Positions 24,564-31,791 of a DNA stretch of 64,000 nt are shown here, piece by piece. The notes beneath the pieces were generated by a model. The model was not told the origin of the DNA and did no database searches. It was given only the letters and a program-made list of their open reading frames with translations. This DNA comes from Epithemia pelagica. Taxonomy: Eukaryota; Protista; Bacillariophyta. The stretch spans positions 3,038,001 through 3,102,000 of the forward strand of contig OX337229.1 in assembly GCA_946965045.2 (NCBI GenBank), given 5' to 3'. Position numbers and translations under genes: made by a program. The first letter of the stretch is position 1. Each line of letters opens with the position of its first letter.

Positions 24564-25892
24564 TCATGTTCTGGGTCTTAATTCTGCCGAGTTACAAGAC
24601 GATCCGACAGATAACCTCTTTCGATTCGCTCCGTGTGAACTTCCACGTAAGGGATCGGTTCCACTTCCCAAAGAAGAGCTTGGTGCACTAAAGGAATTGC
24701 TTGTTCCCACCGATCCTCGTCGAGAGGCTCCAAACGATGAGCTTGTGGGTTTTGCTACTACAGTCGAAAAGGGTGTTGGTATCGTAGTTGTGGAGGACGG
24801 TACATGTGACGCAACAATTTGAACCGAAAACGGAGGACCGCTCGTGACAAAGTTGCTGCCGGTGTATCCACCCGTGGCGTTCACCCCAAACACCGAATTG
24901 TTCGATTCCAAAGAAGCTCTCCGTCTTGCCTTGTACGCACCGAACCCGGGGAGGTCGTTGTTTCCAGTAGAGCTTCGTCTTGTAAAGATGCGTCGGGTCA
25001 GAGACGAGTCTTGAAGCGATCTTCGGCGTCGATTCTTATTTCCATAGTCTGTAGGAACAGCGCCCATGGAAGCTCGCCGTCTTAATGTCTTCCAATTTTT
25101 CAAAACAATCGTTTGTTTTGGTGGTTGCGGTTGAATCAGATTATAATCGGAACTCCGTGTAGTACAGCTCTCCAGGGAACCTCGGCGGTGATGGGAAGAG
25201 GGGTGGAAGGTCAAACCTTGAGGGTTCAAACTGACCGATCGTACCGAACGATCATCCATGCCAGTTATGGAACTGCAATTGCTCATGCATCGTCGCGCTC
25301 GGAACTCATTGGGAGAGCGATGCAATCCTGCAAGTCCAGTAACACCCACACCACTGGAGCTGCGAGGGAGACTACATTTGGAAGAAAGGTGAGTCGGATG
25401 ATGACCCCCGTGAGCAGCTAGCGCAAAAGAATCACGCGCATAAGACTCAAACGAGAAGCTGTCCACTGTTGCGTTGTCGTCAGATCGCAACAATTCTAAC
25501 CCTGTGATTTCAATTTCTTCAAAGGAAGATTGCTTTCGTGATTTCAGTTCATACTGAGCACCATATTGAACCTGATGTGGCTCCTTGAGTTTCGTGGGAG
25601 GGGACGCCTGTGTAGGAAACGGCGGTGGAGGAAGCGGCGATTGGGTTGCTGACGGTGGTGATCGAGTTGGTGACCGGGTGGATGTTGCTCGTGCGGTCGA
25701 TTTGGCCGTTGTTGGTCGTGGTTTGGATGGTGACTGTGGTAGCGAGGATGTTCGGTGCACGGAACGAGACGGACTCAATCTCTTCGGAGCTTTCGTTTCC
25801 ACGTTTTCAGTTGCTGAGAACCATGATAACATGACAGGGCCCGAGGCCGTCGTCGAAGCCCTTCGTTTCGGCTTGAACGGAGTTGTCGTCAT
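24564..25892 (-). CDS. Disordered Ser/Pro/Arg-rich protein with repeated RRxS motifs
   Basis: 442-aa ATG ORF containing RRAS, RRGS, RRRAS, RRRRS and RRSSTG motifs. Confidence 0.65.
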   Translation of the reverse strand: MTTTPFKPKRRASTTASGPVMLSWFSATENVETKAPKRLSPSRSVHRTSSLPQSPSKPRPTTAKSTARATSTRSPTRSPPSATQSPLPPPPFPTQASPPTKLKEPHQVQYGAQYELKSRKQSSFEEIEITGLELLRSDDNATVDSFSFESYARDSFALAAHGGHHPTHLSSKCSLPRSSSGVGVTGLAGLHRSPNEFRARRCMSNCSSITGMDDRSVRSVSLNPQGLTFHPSSHHRRGSLESCTTRSSDYNLIQPQPPKQTIVLKNWKTLRRRASMGAVPTDYGNKNRRRRSLQDSSLTRRIFTRRSSTGNNDLPGFGAYKARRRASLESNNSVFGVNATGGYTGSNFVTSGPPFSVQIVASHVPSSTTTIPTPFSTVVAKPTSSSFGASRRGSVGTSNSFSAPSSSLGSGTDPLRGSSHGANRKRLSVGSSCNSAELRPRT

Positions 25893-26548
25893 GGTCGCTA
25901 TGCTGGTTCATTCAGATGTTCTTCGCCTGTCGTGATGCCGCTGCTGCTGCATTCACGTCGGTGCGTGTTTCGCAAGATAGGGTCGGAACTCGGGGAGCTA
26001 TGGTTTGTCACGTTTCGCACCATCTCTTATTTTTGCTTATTGCGCTACTACCGAACGTGTACTCATATTTCCAACATCCATGTACTCGTAATAACTTATA
26101 CTGATATACGTTTCGAGGACGAGTGGGAGTACGGAGTATGGAAGTTGACTCTTGTCTCCCCAAAATGGAAATTGGGCTATTGTGGGGATCCGAGTTTTTC
26201 TGGTTGGGAGTGTCGTCCTGACTCTGATCATGAGAGTGGAAAATAAACCCTACCAGTCTGCCCCTTCCAAGCCTAAACTCATATTATTGCCTTTTCCATA
26301 TGTTGACGATATGCGAAGACCCATACGGATATCTAAAGAAATGTGCGCAGACACAGGGACACCCGCTATTTTTGTAACCATAGTGCTTATGGACCTTGAA
26401 CAGAATATACCAAAAAGGGCGAAGGACGGACAAGCTTATTTTCTTTTTGGTACACTATAATAGAACAAAATACTTATCGACATTGATATTTCTGTATATT
26501 AGAATACATAGAGAGGAAAATACACGAATCGGAACATTTGGCGAGGGT

Positions 26549-26726
26549 CGATACAACCCGATACAAACCATACAACTGGTCGAAACAACATCCGATACAA
26601 CCGATACAAATTCCGATACAACCCGATACAACCCGATACAACCGATACAACCCCGATACAAACGATACACGGGGGTCGATACAACCGATACAAATCGACG
26701 AAACCCCGATACACACACCCGATACA
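26549..26726 (+). repeat. Left subterminal array of CGATACA heptamers (14 exact copies plus variants)
   Basis: Counted by eye: tcgatacaa, cccgatacaa, tccgatacaa and so on, with irregular short spacing. Confidence 0.92.
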
Positions 26727-26872
26727 ACAACAAGAATGAGTCTTCACAACAAAAATGAGCTTCACAAAACGAGATCGCAAAACACGTCGAAGTTATCGAC
26801 AACGATCGACGAAATGGAACACGACACAACAACCAACCTTTTTTGTCGCCAGGTAGTGGACAAAGAAAGAGG

Positions 26873-27487
26873 ATGAGCAAGCAGGTCTCTGTATCGAAGA
26901 AGGAGAAGGAGAAGGAGAAGTTTGTTGATTGGAGGAAATGCGAGGGGCGGGCGATCCTCATCGAGGATTTGGAGCCAGGTGGTCTGCTCTACAACATGAA
27001 CATGGTGCCGGCAGACCACCTTTTCAAGTTTTACAAGCGGCTCCCGGAGTTCAAAGGTGTCCCCTTCCAACAATTCAAGGCACGGCTGCAGGATCATCGA
27101 CGCCAAGCAGACTACGCGAATGAAAGGGCAAGAAGTGACGAAAGGGCCCTTATTCATGACAGAAGGTTATATCCAAGACAACAACACAACAACAAAGGTG
27201 AACTTGTCTTTGACCTTCACCCTGCAAAGCTGCTTCTTCGGCAGGATGTGAAGAATGGTGTGCACCTACGCTTGAAGCCATCCGAGCTTCAAAGGACACG
27301 TCCTGCCTACAGAGACTTTAAGCCAGCAATCTTCAAGCACCGCATTTACCAGGAAGCACGCCACCAACGTTTTTTCAACTATCTGGCACTGAAACGCGAG
27401 GAGGAGCAAGGACGAGGACCTGTTGTCCCCTGTGATGAGCTGCGACGACGACATGATTTGGCAAATCATATACAAGACTATACGTAA
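26873..27487 (+). CDS. Transposon ORF1: protein with two ~55-aa internal modules
   Basis: ATG at 26873. Module 1 W..CEGRAILIEDLEPGG...LPEFKGVPFQQFKARL; module 2 F..HPAKLLLRQDVKNG...RPAYRDFKPAIFKHRI. Confidence 0.75.
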   Translation: MSKQVSVSKKEKEKEKFVDWRKCEGRAILIEDLEPGGLLYNMNMVPADHLFKFYKRLPEFKGVPFQQFKARLQDHRRQADYANERARSDERALIHDRRLYPRQQHNNKGELVFDLHPAKLLLRQDVKNGVHLRLKPSELQRTRPAYRDFKPAIFKHRIYQEARHQRFFNYLALKREEEQGRGPVVPCDELRRRHDLANHIQDYT

Positions 27488-27532
27488 ACAAATAGAAAAC
27501 ACAAACAAACTTTTCTCTACTTTAGACATTCA

Positions 27533-28522
27533 TTAGGGTTGAAAGAGATGAGAGCTGCCATTGTTCATGGCATATTGCAACGTAACAGCGACAGCTCGAA
27601 AGGCAAGTCCATGATTCGTGTCGCTGTGCCTCCAAGTTTGGTGCATGGAGGCAAAGGTAGACATTTTTCCGTTGAACGATTCGTGTCGCAGGCGGATGCG
27701 ACTCTTAATATTGTTTGCCATCCTTGAATCGTGTTGTGGGTTGGGCCAAGCAACCTTGTCGCGGAAAGCATTCTTGATGTAACCGCGATCAGCCACAACC
27801 TTTTTTCCATCCGCGAGGTGCTCCAGCACACCAGACCTCTCGAGCATCTCCTTGTCACCCATGCCTCCGCGCACTGGTCCAAAGATATCCACGACTTGCT
27901 GGCGATATGCACATAGAGTGATTTGATATTTCACTCCACCGTGCGCATGCTTCTGTGAGAAATTTCGTCGATCAAACGGAAGCAGTTCAGTCTTGTGCTT
28001 TCGTTCCCACGTTTTCTTATCAACACCATCCACAGATAGCGCGAAAATCTCCGAGTCAGGATTGTTCAGGTCGTGAGGCCAGAAAATTACCTTCTCCTCA
28101 AGCGCTGCGATCTTCCGAATCCATTTCCAGAGATTCTTGCCTCGGACGTTGCACGCACAAATTCGGAACCTGTCACCAAGCTGTACGCTGCTTCGAGGAT
28201 AGCTGTAGATAAAGAAATGCGCAACCATGAACATGCGAAAGCCTTTTTGTTTATCCTTAGTACTTAGCTTTGCCTCTTCAATTGTCGTATGGCACAAGTC
28301 ATACCACATGGTTGCAATTGTAAGAGGCACCGATCCATAGTGTTGTTGGAACTTGTTGATGCGTTGCTCCCTCGTCAGACGGCCATCCACGTCCAAGGAG
28401 AGATAAGCTAAGCCTCGCGTGAGAACCTCGTCTGGCTCGACCAGTGGCACCATCTTCTCTTTATGTTGAACAGTAGGAAGATTCCGATGCGACCAACTTG
28501 GGGGAAGGAAGACAGCCTTCAT
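27533..28522 (-). CDS. PIF/Harbinger-like DDE transposase (329 aa)
   Basis: Catalytic-type motifs SVDGVD, FSQKH..GGVKYQI, GPVRGG..DKEM, VVADRGY and RIRLRHESFNG..F give a D-D-E triad as in IS5/PIF-Harbinger nucleases. No stops or frameshifts. Confidence 0.88.
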   Translation of the reverse strand: MKAVFLPPSWSHRNLPTVQHKEKMVPLVEPDEVLTRGLAYLSLDVDGRLTREQRINKFQQHYGSVPLTIATMWYDLCHTTIEEAKLSTKDKQKGFRMFMVAHFFIYSYPRSSVQLGDRFRICACNVRGKNLWKWIRKIAALEEKVIFWPHDLNNPDSEIFALSVDGVDKKTWERKHKTELLPFDRRNFSQKHAHGGVKYQITLCAYRQQVVDIFGPVRGGMGDKEMLERSGVLEHLADGKKVVADRGYIKNAFRDKVAWPNPQHDSRMANNIKSRIRLRHESFNGKMSTFASMHQTWRHSDTNHGLAFRAVAVTLQYAMNNGSSHLFQP

Positions 28523-28790
28523 GGCTCATTCCCTAGTAGTGTCACAAATTGGCGGAAAGGTGCTTCATCCCGAACACGAGTAGAAGGATCCGTGGGTCCA
28601 CACACACCAATCTGCCCTAAGTAAACTAAAATACTGCTTATGATCAAGCAATCAAACACATTCCTATGATATTAGTAGCTGTAGACAAACCAACGACACA
28701 AGAGGAGCATGTTGGATCAAGAGGGAATGGCTTGCGCTTCGCAAACCTGTCTACTTCTCTCGTTGATTGTTGGATCATTGATTTTCTATC

Positions 28791-30248
28791 ATGACAGAGC
28801 AACAACATGATCATAAATTGGACGAAGAGAAGAAACCACCGCCAAAGAGGCCAGCCAAGTTCCCCGCTCCAGGTGGATTGCCGTTTGACCAAACAAGAAA
28901 ATTAATCAAGGCCATCGAAAAACAAGGCCAGTCGAGACACTCCTTTGATCTCCTTTCGTTTTGCAGTAATAATCCCACCGACTGGGGATTTGAAGGCTCG
29001 TTGAAGCGACGACAAGTACAACTTCGCTGGGGCAAGTGCAAGTCCCGGTCCATCCAAGCCTACGTCAACTACCTCCATCGACTGGGAGTTGATCCAAACG
29101 AGAAGACTCTCAAAGAACTTGAAAACAAAGAGTCAGGAACCATGGTGAAGAGCAACAAGATTTCCGACAATGACACTTACACCACTGATGTTGCCGACGA
29201 CGTCAGCCCCGAAGAGGAGCAGATGTACAAGGACGCTTATGGGCGCTTGTATGGTGATCAAGATTATGCTGCTGGCATGGCTGAGCAAGACGACGACAGG
29301 AAGCCAGCTCCCCGCAATCTCAACCGCACACCTGTGAAGGGAGGAGAATCACCGGCGGTGTTTCTTGGCAACGATGCCCACGATGCCCACGATCAGCAGA
29401 TGGGACAGGTAAACGCCTCCAACTTCTTCGCAAGTCCCAGCCCAGCACGCCACAACGTTGCCGCCGCTTATGCTGTCCCTGGTGTTGACCTCAATGGAGG
29501 TGATCCACCGCAACATGTCTTCGGGAGGGTGTCTCCACTTCTTTCTCGTATCCCTCCTCGTCCCCCACAACTGCCTAACGACGTGTTGCACCCATTTGTT
29601 CCGACAAGTTGGTTGGTGAATCAAAATGGGACGGTCAAGCACCCTTGGATAATCGCCGTCAACCATTTGTGTGCCGAACGTAACAGAGATTTCGACATTC
29701 AATACGTTGAAGGGATCGACCAGGACGAACTTTTCACTCGCAACGGCTTCCACTTACGCCGTTCAGTCCCTTGCCAGGACCATCATTTATGGGATGCGAG
29801 CATTCCCGACGATGTTTTCGGAGAAAGCTGGCGTGGTCGTTTAATCTCGATGAGGGGGCCGGCGCAGGACTTCTGGATCCGCGATCCCGAGCGGTACCAC
29901 AAGGACGAGAAGTTGTCCAAGATCAAGTGTGCCGCTACAAAGAAGGCCCATAGTGCTACTATGGTGGCTATTGAGGATTCTGACGATGGCAGCTACTGGG
30001 CCCACTATAGGTTTGCCTTTCACCCGTCTATCAAACTCGACAACCAGATTTTCTCCAAGGATGAGACTGTCATCCCTACGGAGTACAACCCCATCAAAAT
30101 GAAATCAAATGACTCAGAGAATGATTTCGGCCGTGATCTCCTTGGTATGACTATCTTTTGGCGCATTGCATGCAAGGGTGGCACCAAGATTGCCACCAAA
30201 GGCAAGAAGAATGCGGAGGCTGCCAAGAACATGTTTGGTGACTTGTAA
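28791..30248 (+). CDS. Transposon ORF3: putative DNA-binding accessory protein (485 aa)
   Basis: Intronless ORF divergent from the transposase. Basic helical N-terminal region (FDQTRKLIKAIEK..WGFEGSLKRRQVQLRWGKCK) loosely resembles Myb/SANT-like domains, followed by an acidic linker and a globular C-terminal region. Confidence 0.7.
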   Translation: MTEQQHDHKLDEEKKPPPKRPAKFPAPGGLPFDQTRKLIKAIEKQGQSRHSFDLLSFCSNNPTDWGFEGSLKRRQVQLRWGKCKSRSIQAYVNYLHRLGVDPNEKTLKELENKESGTMVKSNKISDNDTYTTDVADDVSPEEEQMYKDAYGRLYGDQDYAAGMAEQDDDRKPAPRNLNRTPVKGGESPAVFLGNDAHDAHDQQMGQVNASNFFASPSPARHNVAAAYAVPGVDLNGGDPPQHVFGRVSPLLSRIPPRPPQLPNDVLHPFVPTSWLVNQNGTVKHPWIIAVNHLCAERNRDFDIQYVEGIDQDELFTRNGFHLRRSVPCQDHHLWDASIPDDVFGESWRGRLISMRGPAQDFWIRDPERYHKDEKLSKIKCAATKKAHSATMVAIEDSDDGSYWAHYRFAFHPSIKLDNQIFSKDETVIPTEYNPIKMKSNDSENDFGRDLLGMTIFWRIACKGGTKIATKGKKNAEAAKNMFGDL

Positions 30249-30270
30249 GCCACCAATTCCTACGAGTGTT

Positions 30271-30311
30271 TACATGATGAGTTTTTACATGATGAGTTTT
30301 TACATGATGAG
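30271..30311. repeat. Tandem 15-bp repeat TACATGATGAGTTTT x ~2.7
   Basis: Direct reading between the convergent stops of ORF3 and ORF4. Confidence 0.9.
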
Positions 30312-30390
30312 AGTTTCTACATTGACGAGTAGTTAGTAATCTTCCTTTATCCTATATTAGTTGAGAATTTGCATTGACCATGATGTTGCA

Positions 30391-30837
30391 TTAACCGTGA
30401 CCATAGCGCACACGACGCCAACGAGCCTTGTCCACACGTAGGTTACTTTGACGTTGCACAGCAACCGTCAAATAATTTAGGAACAAGTTCCCAATCCGAT
30501 GGCCAGCTTCTCCTTCGGAGGAGATGCCCTCACACTGGGACAGCCTCCTCGTAAGGTCGCGTAGCAGCTCTTCAATGTCACAGTGCTGCTGGAGAACAGC
30601 CTCTTCATAGCTTGCCGGTGGTGCTTCCTCTCCGACTCGGATCGATTCGTGATGAAGCCGTGTTGCAATCTCCTCCTCGTTCGGCTTGATGACGATAATG
30701 ACGTAGGTAAAGAACTCTGTCCTGCCCTTCTTCTTGTCGAGGAAGCCCCTCTTTCCACGGTACGTCCCACCAACAATCCGGATCTTGGCTCCCTTCCGGT
30801 CGGCGGGGTAAACCTTCGGTTTCTTCTTCTCGGCCAT
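30391..30837 (-). CDS. Transposon ORF4: small KOW-motif protein (148 aa)
   Basis: ATG at 30837. RKGAKIRIVGGTYRGKRGFLDK fits the KOW consensus (G..V.I..G.Y.G..G); helical C-terminal half. Confidence 0.72.
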   Translation of the reverse strand: MAEKKKPKVYPADRKGAKIRIVGGTYRGKRGFLDKKKGRTEFFTYVIIVIKPNEEEIATRLHHESIRVGEEAPPASYEEAVLQQHCDIEELLRDLTRRLSQCEGISSEGEAGHRIGNLFLNYLTVAVQRQSNLRVDKARWRRVRYGHG

Positions 30838-30969
30838 GATTGCGACTTCTTCTTCTTGCTTTCGTCTTGAAAAATGAGTCTGATTGTTGTGTTGCTGTTG
30901 TCGCAAGCAATTTCATTGGCGAGTTTGGCAGGAACCAATTCTTCGATTGCTTGATCCATCGCTTTATCA

Positions 30970-31050
30970 TTGTATCGCTCTCATTTCAAAAGTCGCCTGT
31001 TTATTCCATCTTGTATCGCTCTCATTTCAAAAGTCGCCTGTTTATTCCAT
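30970..31050. repeat. Exact 40-bp tandem duplication
   Basis: TTGTATCGCTCTCATTTCAAAAGTCGCCTGTTTATTCCAT at 30970-31009 and 31011-31050. Each copy contains TGTATCG, the reverse complement of the array heptamer. Confidence 0.92.
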
Positions 31051-31064
31051 GGTGACCGTCAACC

Positions 31065-31254
31065 CGATACATCAGGCCGATACAAATCGCAACAAATTCG
31101 GAAGACCCGATACAGAGGACTCGAGTCCCCCGATACAAATACGGTTACAAATCCGTTGTATCGATACAGTACCTAAGCCCCCCGATACAACTAGATACAA
31201 CCCCGATACACGACTGGATACAGTTGTATGTGCATCGATACAGAATCCGATACA
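31065..31254 (+). repeat. Right subterminal array of CGATACA heptamers (9 exact + strand copies plus variants)
   Basis: Counted by eye; same strand orientation as the left array. Includes the palindrome TGTATCGATACA. Confidence 0.88.
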
Positions 31255-31791
31255 TTTGGCGAGCTCAGCGCAAGGCTTCCCGAAGTTCAATAATTGGTAC
31301 ATTTAAGTAATTTTTTAGACACGTGCCGGTTCCTCTTTTGATAGTGTACAAAAATCGGGTACAGTCATCTCAACCAATCAGAAATAAGCCCAGTGGGGTC
31401 ATGGTTACAAATATAGCGGGTGTCCCAGACAAGCTAGCCGCACTCTTTCGATCACATATTTTGCTCTACTTACTCCTAGTAAGGAGTGAACATTCATCGC
31501 CTCATGTCTCATTCGATGCAATCGCAAGTTCATTACCTTCGGATTTCACCGTCATCGGCCATGATGTCAATCTTCATCTCACCAGTGGAAACCTGGTCGC
31601 TGGAAGAGCCAAACAGAATTTGATCGTTCGTGATAGCGCAACCTTTGATTCAAATAATCATTACCCTGAACAGGAATCAAGGGAATGAAAGAATGGAGGA
31701 TGCGCGATAAAATCTCTAATATTCGTTAGTGAAATGCAACAAGAAAATGAGAAGCCATTTCGAGTCGTCTCTCCAACATGTAACACGGTTG

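Follow-up and report, generated by a model that had tools for sequence, protein, structure and literature searches.

We analyzed a 64,000-nucleotide stretch of the genome of the diatom Epithemia pelagica (assembly GCA_946965045.2, contig OX337229.1, positions 3,038,001 to 3,102,000 of the forward strand), hereafter referred to as the window. At 26357-31425 of the window lies a 5,069-bp element with four genes, one for a transposase and three for accessory proteins encoded by the open reading frames (ORFs) ORF1, ORF3 and ORF4. We put the probability at about 0.8 that this element is a cut-and-paste transposon of the PIF/Harbinger (PHIS) type, both autonomous and recently active, which inserts at CWG (W, A or T) and carries its four genes as a linked module. 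The first-pass annotation of the window, made from the sequence alone, had proposed a distinct and recently active multi-gene lineage of Harbinger type, and our results point the same way: the transposase belongs to DDE_Tnp_4, the closest copies differ by 0.1-0.2%, and the four genes occur together elsewhere.

Ends, target site and copies of the element

A search of the source genome assembly (60.5 Mb, 23 contigs) at the DNA level, as the first-pass annotation had advised, returned eight full-length or nearly full-length copies on seven contigs, the closest of them 0.1-0.2% apart and with intact duplications. Six of the eight share both of their end points with the copy in the window, one is without the right tip, and one carries internal deletions. 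The limits of the element were set by copy-to-copy homology among these eight copies, and the homology starts and stops at a 26-nt terminal inverted repeat (26356-26381 and 31401-31426, 96% complementary). The left arm proper, GGACACCCGCTATTTTTGTAACCAT, occupies 26357-26381 on the plus strand, the repeat search having taken in G26356 too. The right arm, placed by the inverted-repeat pair together with the copy boundaries, occupies 31401-31425 on the minus strand. Immediately outside stand the two halves of a target-site duplication, CAG at 26354-26356 and CAG at 31426-31428, the latter read from the flank. The 14-nt inverted sequences at 26445-26458 and 31341-31354, earlier taken for the ends, are internal: termini at 26445 and 31354 are ruled out, as both positions fall inside the copy-to-copy homology. 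The limits first claimed were thus too short, by ~94 bp on the left and ~76 bp on the right.

We read the flanks of ten insertions, namely seven full-length copies and three short derivatives. The copy L005 was left out of this reading, since the last ~12 nt of its right repeat are lost. In nine of the ten (six full-length, three short), C-W-G stands on both sides with the identical middle base, giving six CAG and three CTG duplications. The tenth, L008, has mismatched flanks, one reading CAG and the other CTG.

Any two of the copies L001-L004 are 5-10 substitutions apart over 5,071 bp (0.1-0.2%), and L006 and L007 differ from the window copy by 17 and 48 substitutions, respectively. In L008, deletions have removed 91 bp from ORF1 and 1 bp from the transposase gene, and ORF3 contains a stop codon. 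All four frames are open at full length in five of the eight copies; among the remaining ones, one has a shortened transposase match and one a stop codon within the ORF4 match. Because some copies are nearly identical and the CWG duplications match, the sequences indicate that the element has moved recently.

Inside the terminal repeats, the array unit CGATACAA of ~10 nt recurs at both ends. The left subterminal array (26549-26728) holds 14 copies of CGATACA(A) with a period of ~10 nt, all on the plus strand. The right array (31063-31255) holds 10 copies of CGATACA on the plus strand, in the same orientation as on the left, and one on the minus strand. As the plus-strand units point the same way at both ends, the arrays are direct rather than inverted. 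In the whole window CGATACA is present 37 times, where 5.0 would be expected, and none of the shuffled sequences attained this count. The first-pass annotation had placed the genes between two repeat arrays, which is what we find. Several elements of ~1.3 kb consist of the inverted repeats and both arrays only, flanked by CAG duplications; their ends are ~87-91% identical to those of the full element, and they hold 15 + 10 array units in the same orientation. Two longer elements, of 2.5 and 6.4 kb, have the same ends.

L007 (G000:C7:1186266-1191355) and L008 (G000:C7:1296761-1301753) lie 110 kb apart and have a common left flank of ~800 bp at 96.5% identity, of which the last ~100 bp are nearly identical. 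Together with the mismatched duplications of L008, the common flank points to insertion into a different repeat or to copies having been rearranged with each other. At the end of this flank is a tRNA-like GGTTCGAGTCC motif, and a tRNA was considered here and rejected, as ARAGORN predicted none. The 1.3-kb derivative L011 (G000:C9:3211475-3212791) is followed, five bases past its end, by another GGGACACCCG terminus, and its neighbor L023 (G000:C9:3212000-3219000) is a four-gene element of a related family, family D. Elements of this group therefore lie nested or end to end.

Gene layout and transposase

The four uninterrupted ORFs follow each other in the order + / - / + / -, as first described and as the ORF listing bears out. 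ORF1 (frame 26843-27487, plus strand; 204 aa from the first ATG at 26873) encodes two duplicated modules, each predicted to have three helices. The transposase gene (27533-28522, minus strand) encodes 329 aa. ORF3 (28791-30248, plus strand, 485 aa) encodes a predicted helical domain, a disordered acidic linker and a putative beta-sandwich. ORF4 (frame 30391-30906, minus strand; from the first ATG at 30837, hence 30391-30837) encodes 148 aa, with a basic, KOW-like N-terminal half and a helical-looking C-terminal half. The genes had also been called intronless. Each ORF aligns over its full length to diverged homologues with no intron needed, which would fit intronless genes.

The transposase matches DDE_Tnp_4 (PF13359) with an E value of 2e-11 and 44.2 bits, against a cut-off of 24.8. 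Residues D165 (in SVDGVD), D245 (in ADRGY) and E281 (in RHESFNG) are invariant in 14 aligned homologues of 28-64% identity, and these residues are candidates for the catalytic triad. Their arrangement is the usual Harbinger pattern. A sequence-profile search of the transposase against PDB gave nothing below E 0.1. Taken together, the DDE_Tnp_4 type, the predicted D-D-E triad, the terminal inverted repeats and the 3-bp duplication place the element within PIF/Harbinger (PHIS).

Linkage of the four genes within the genome

Six-frame protein searches of the genome gave 122 matches for the transposase, 53 for ORF1, 50 for ORF3 and 39 for ORF4. We grouped matches that lie less than 12 kb from each other, using all those for ORF1, ORF3 and ORF4 and the 47 strongest for the transposase. 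Of the resulting 52 clusters, 33 hold all four genes by tblastn. Five clusters seemed to be without ORF3, and a genome profile search placed ORF3 in all five. In the two that we inspected, an ORF of 494-530 aa at the position of ORF3 was identified as ORF3 by comparing profiles, with a probability of 99.6-99.8% (E 1e-23 to 4e-28). This brings the four-gene clusters to 38 of 52. Nearly every ORF4 match (38/39) is in the same cluster as a transposase match, and the lone ORF1 and ORF3 matches are partial and weak. ORF1-like genes flank much more distant transposases too.

The window family and families B-F have the order ORF1+ Tp- ORF3+ ORF4- (order 1; Tp, transposase). A second order, ORF1- ORF3+ Tp- ORF4+, was observed in L026, L027 and L030, and its mirror image in L035. 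Between families, pS, the proportion of differing synonymous sites, is 0.69-0.87 and thus saturated, and the proteins are 20-64% identical with open frames. Saturated synonymous sites in proteins that still align and whose frames are open imply long-term purifying selection on all four genes.

The ends vary between families as well. Family B has the same terminal tip GGGACACCCG as the window family and is flanked by CTG. Its arrays, again direct at both ends in the same layout, consist of TTTGTTTCGAC, a unit that is related to that of the window family but distinct from it. Family H (L026 757-1431 and 5793-6467; G000:C9:2305000-2312500) belongs to the same four-gene clade, but its end architecture is far from that of the window family: its inverted repeats are 675 bp long and 99% complementary, and in each the 8-nt unit ATCCACAA is repeated ~20 times in tandem. 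If ends and proteins change in step between families, this would fit a DNA reader specific to each family.

Some of the related elements are rearranged. In a family C copy (G000:C2:3622474-3634834), the two parts of the ORF3 match (3624463-3625404 and 3633806-3634225) are ~8.4 kb apart, probably by a nested insertion. L032 (G000:C16:891000-900999) has a tandemly duplicated transposase-ORF3-ORF1 block inside one element, where tblastn reads ORF4, Tp, ORF1, Tp, ORF1. The ORF1 homologue of family F (L025 1348-2439; G000:C1:4639000-4648000) has an N-terminal extension of ~115 aa with His-rich repeats, which seems to be the subterminal array read through in frame and not genuine coding sequence.

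Occurrence outside the genome

All four genes, at 35-57% identity, follow each other in order 1 on a 5,071-bp metagenome contig from JGI (L041). The gene set also appears in other orders on the metagenome contigs L047 (ENA) and L050 and L051 (JGI), with all four genes present on L047 and L050. L050 shows a third order, Tp+ ORF1- ORF3+ ORF4-. The first-pass annotation had proposed a check for conserved four-ORF synteny; co-occurrence is kept in the metagenome contigs, but the gene order is not constant, with three orders observed. It had also named as its counter-case accessory homologues occurring independently of the transposase, and the genes instead accompany it in 38/52 clusters and on independent metagenome contigs.

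Diatoms are the only organisms named for the homologues. One contig of Epithemia clementina carries ORF3 together with part of ORF4, and neither ORF1 nor the transposase was matched close by. An ORF1 homologue is present in the Cylindrotheca fusiformis record P0048 of EukProt, which we take to be a transcriptome assembly. An exhaustive profile search of public data showed the ORF3 family to be large, with 1,202 cluster representatives at E ≤0.001 and 246 at ≤1e-30. None of 38 sampled family members contains a Pfam domain. Two distant ORF3 relatives adjoin ORF1, and one of them adjoins ORF4 too.

Predicted structures of the accessory proteins

The three accessory proteins were compared by sequence and by predicted structure. 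No paralogy among ORF1, ORF3 and ORF4 was detected, and Pfam scans of all homologue sets gave low-complexity noise only, such as YL1 and SR-25. Foldseek comparison of the ORF1 and ORF3 models against PDB returned nothing at E ≤0.001. The fold matches described below come from a second search tool, for which Z scores below 8 may reflect a common arrangement only.

The model of ORF1 (predicted local distance difference test, pLDDT, 90) consists of two three-helix modules, each with a long basic helix at its end. Comparison by hhalign shows that one half is homologous to the other (probability 94.5%, E 7.5e-8). The isoelectric point (pI) is 9.9 for the whole protein and 10.5 for the second module. 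Weak fold matches include DNA-bound homeodomain, Myb/GARP and SANT structures (Z 4.2-5.0) and FF domains (Z 4.2-5.2). ORF1 and 11 relatives have no Myb/SANT match in Pfam, even at E up to 1, and a structure search of the ESM Atlas gave a TM score of at most 0.38. Among the accessory genes, ORF1 is the one with the most relatives returned by a word-index search. Complex prediction for the transposase with ORF1 gave a median score of 0.33, where the mark is 0.34, with the controls at 0.00-0.01; this result speaks neither for binding nor against it.

In the ORF3 model, a helical domain (~30-117; mean pLDDT ~94) is joined by a disordered acidic linker (118-267) to a beta-rich domain (~270-470; mean pLDDT ~80). 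The top 27 fold matches of the C-terminal domain are nearly all small heat-shock proteins (alpha-crystallin) or CS/p23 proteins, with Z 4.4-6.0 over 74-117 aligned residues. This domain may be an HSP20/CS-like beta-sandwich, all its fold matches being weak. Pfam HSP20 matched only host genes in the genome, and a feature search of the ESM Atlas with ORF3 gave nothing usable.

The N-terminal half of ORF4 is basic and contains the motif KG-x-I-R/K-F/I-V-G-G-T-Y-x-G-x-x-G-W. To the eye, this glycine motif looks KOW-like. The KOW profile PF00467 matched none of 14 ORF4 homologues, and none of its six matches genome-wide lies at an ORF4 locus. Alignment of ORF4 to host KOW regions by hhalign reached a probability of 5.9%, though with the glycine motif in register. 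In an ESM Atlas feature search the best score was 0.79, and a KOW cluster ranked 10. Elsewhere in the genome, at G000:C23:56247-56342, an 82-aa ORF with a KOW motif resembles organellar ribosomal protein L24. Contig 23 may, judged by such content, be an organelle genome.

Proposed roles and alternative explanations

In the mechanism that we propose, the DDE enzyme would cut and rejoin the element ends, and excision would be followed by reinsertion at CWG with a 3-bp duplication. An element-encoded protein would read the subterminal repeats and tether the transposase to the ends, as the Myb-like protein does in canonical Harbingers. We give ORF1 slightly better than an even chance of being this DNA-reading partner in place of the Myb/SANT protein. 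It is favored because it is basic and made of tandem helical repeats, has the most relatives in the word-index search, and accompanies much more distant transposases. ORF3 and ORF4 would most likely join the transposition complex as additional subunits or chaperones, or else secure expression of the element; whether the ORF3 sandwich and ORF4 act on assembly or stability of the complex, on expression or on silencing is a matter of speculation. The roles that the first-pass annotation had suggested for the extra genes, in targeting, RNA binding or anti-silencing, are likewise conjecture. ORF3 and ORF4 are kept in every autonomous family, which argues that they are needed for propagation. The ~1.3-kb derivatives keep only the inverted repeats and arrays and presumably depend on proteins supplied in trans. 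A bolder proposal is that ORF1 (tandem three-helix reader), ORF3 (crystallin/CS-fold chaperone) and ORF4 (KOW-like) are obligate subunits, which together replace the Myb/SANT partner. We regard it as tentative and rather doubtful. If true, the widespread group to which the element belongs would form a sub-type of the superfamily that has yet to be described, and its three protein families would be without a name.

Several results weigh against our reading of the element. ORF1, ORF3 and ORF4 match no Pfam family, whether the window proteins or the homologue sets are searched, and their sequence-profile searches against PDB gave nothing below E 0.1. The fold matches of ORF1 and ORF3 all have Z ≤6, a range that possibly reflects mere common arrangement. 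Moreover, ORF1 resembles FF domains as well as DNA-binding three-helix domains.

FF domains are protein-binding modules, and this resemblance opens another assignment of roles. The DNA-binding partner could be the N-terminal helical domain of ORF3, with ORF1 as an FF-like adaptor that binds proteins, such as phosphorylated RNA polymerase II or splicing factors, and links the element to transcription. Among the top 50 structures matched by ORF1, nine are FF domains (Prp40, Z 5.2; tandem FF of TCERG1, Z 4.8-4.9), FF1 of p190 RhoGAP shows 23% identity to ORF1 among the structural matches, and the tandem units of ORF1 are joined by long helices as in FF arrays. The ORF3 domain (30-117, pLDDT > 90, pI 9.6) has weak matches to helical DNA-binding domains, of the Myb type and others (PHR2, Reb1, TrpR and homeo-prospero; Z 3.9-4.3), and most gene orders place ORF1 and ORF3 next to each other as a divergent pair. 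However, Pfam FF does not match ORF1 even at E up to 1, ORF1 is strongly basic, above all in its second repeat (pI 10.5), and ORF1-like genes stand beside distant transposases where ORF3 is undetected. The Z scores are too low for a choice between the ORF1 folds. We consider this assignment unlikely on balance.

Still less probable, in our judgment, is that ORF3 and ORF4 are captured host passengers or selfish add-ons outside transposition, possibly concerned with regulation or anti-silencing. DNA transposons are known to pick up extra genes. The PHISTA elements, with a TET/JBP dioxygenase and a third protein without Myb/SANT, are a precedent (PMC12730594), and three gene orders mean that the module has been reshuffled. 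Yet our genome searches revealed no free-standing host copy, and what they matched at a distance from any transposase comes down to two fragments of ORF3 and a single degraded remnant of ORF3-ORF4. The genes have kept company with the transposase while divergence became saturating, and do so on contigs of unrelated samples too, whereas a neutral passenger would be expected to be lost in some autonomous family. The ORF listing was purely mechanical, which leaves the suspicion that the extra ORFs are chance frames or miscalled pieces of spliced genes in an ordinary two-gene Harbinger. This is effectively refuted: each ORF has homologues at 20-60% amino acid identity with open frames at > 30 loci and saturated synonymous sites, neighboring genes lie on opposite strands, the models reach a pLDDT of 90 for ORF1 and means of ~94 and ~80 for the two ORF3 domains, and ORF1 has its homologue in Cylindrotheca fusiformis (P0048).

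Comparison with known Harbinger systems

Harbinger is the textbook DNA transposon that needs exactly two proteins, both of which have been repeatedly domesticated as host genes. In canonical elements, the partner of the transposase carries a Myb/SANT/trihelix domain (PMC4482050, PMC2836001). The diatom element resembles canonical PIF/Harbinger elements (Harbinger3_DR, Ping/Pong) in its DDE_Tnp_4-type transposase, short inverted repeats and 3-bp duplication, and further in its separately encoded partner, subterminal repeats and short deletion derivatives. It differs in that it has four genes, none matching a Myb/SANT model, and in its target, which is CWG instead of the canonical TWA. In the 60.5-Mb genome, Myb_DNA-bind_4 (PF13837) gave a single match, below threshold, and the same genome holds > 100 Harbinger-type transposase matches in several families. 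Throughout this genome, the usual Myb partner of Harbinger thus seems to be absent.

Among the described groups, NuwaI of PHIS is defined by a 5'-CWG-3' duplication, occurs mostly in animals and has two ORFs, the second with Myb/SANT (Han et al. 2015, PMC4482050). The diatom element shares with NuwaI the CWG duplication and a DDE transposase without other domains, and is distinguished by its diatom lineage, its four ORFs and the lack of a detectable Myb/SANT domain. By its CWG target duplication, the lineage may be called NuwaI-like.

In PHISTA elements of Pucciniales rust fungi, the transposase is accompanied by a TET/JBP dioxygenase and by a third protein that lacks Myb/SANT; these elements produce TA duplications and were placed near Nuwa and Harbinger4_TP (PMC12730594). 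They are Harbinger-related, have more than two proteins, and their non-transposase proteins are without Myb/SANT, which makes them the nearest published multi-gene relatives of the diatom element. In contrast to PHISTA, the diatom element has a 3-bp CWG and not a 2-bp TA duplication, and the transposase is its only recognizable enzyme, with no dioxygenase. From its name, we take Harbinger4_TP to be a family of the diatom Thalassiosira pseudonana, and diatom Harbingers would therefore already be catalogued in Repbase. ISL2EU has a YqaJ-type exonuclease as partner and a 2-bp duplication (PMC4482050). It belongs to the same superfamily and likewise has a non-Myb second protein, but neither the exonuclease nor the 2-bp duplication is seen here.

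The literature that we searched holds no account of a four-gene Harbinger or of the ORF1, ORF3 or ORF4 proteins. What appears to be new is a lineage of CWG-target Harbingers that has conserved a module of four genes and lacks a Myb/SANT partner. It suggests that the partner requirement of Harbinger transposases is more flexible than described. The module adds three sizeable protein families without a Pfam model, of which ORF3 alone has ~1,200 cluster representatives. The near-identical, apparently intact copies suit direct testing and could perhaps provide a tool for gene transfer or mutagenesis in diatoms. Recognition of the module also matters for annotation: without it, these ORFs would enter every diatom genome annotation as 'hypothetical' host genes, by the dozen.

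Other repeats and the flanking ORF

Besides the arrays, a 12-nt motif, ACATTTGGCGAG, occurs twice on the plus strand, at 26534-26545 near the left end and, in the same orientation, at 31252-31263 near the right end. A 15-nt tandem repeat of 3.2 copies (30264-30311, plus strand) lies between the convergent stops of ORF3 and ORF4, and a perfect 41-nt tandem duplication (30970-31050, plus strand) lies upstream of ORF4. The spacer of 268 bp between the divergent starts of the transposase gene and ORF3 (28523-28790) is presumed, from gene geometry only, to be a bidirectional promoter. Directly left of the insertion, the window contains a Ser/Thr/Pro-rich ORF of 442 aa (24564-25892, minus strand).

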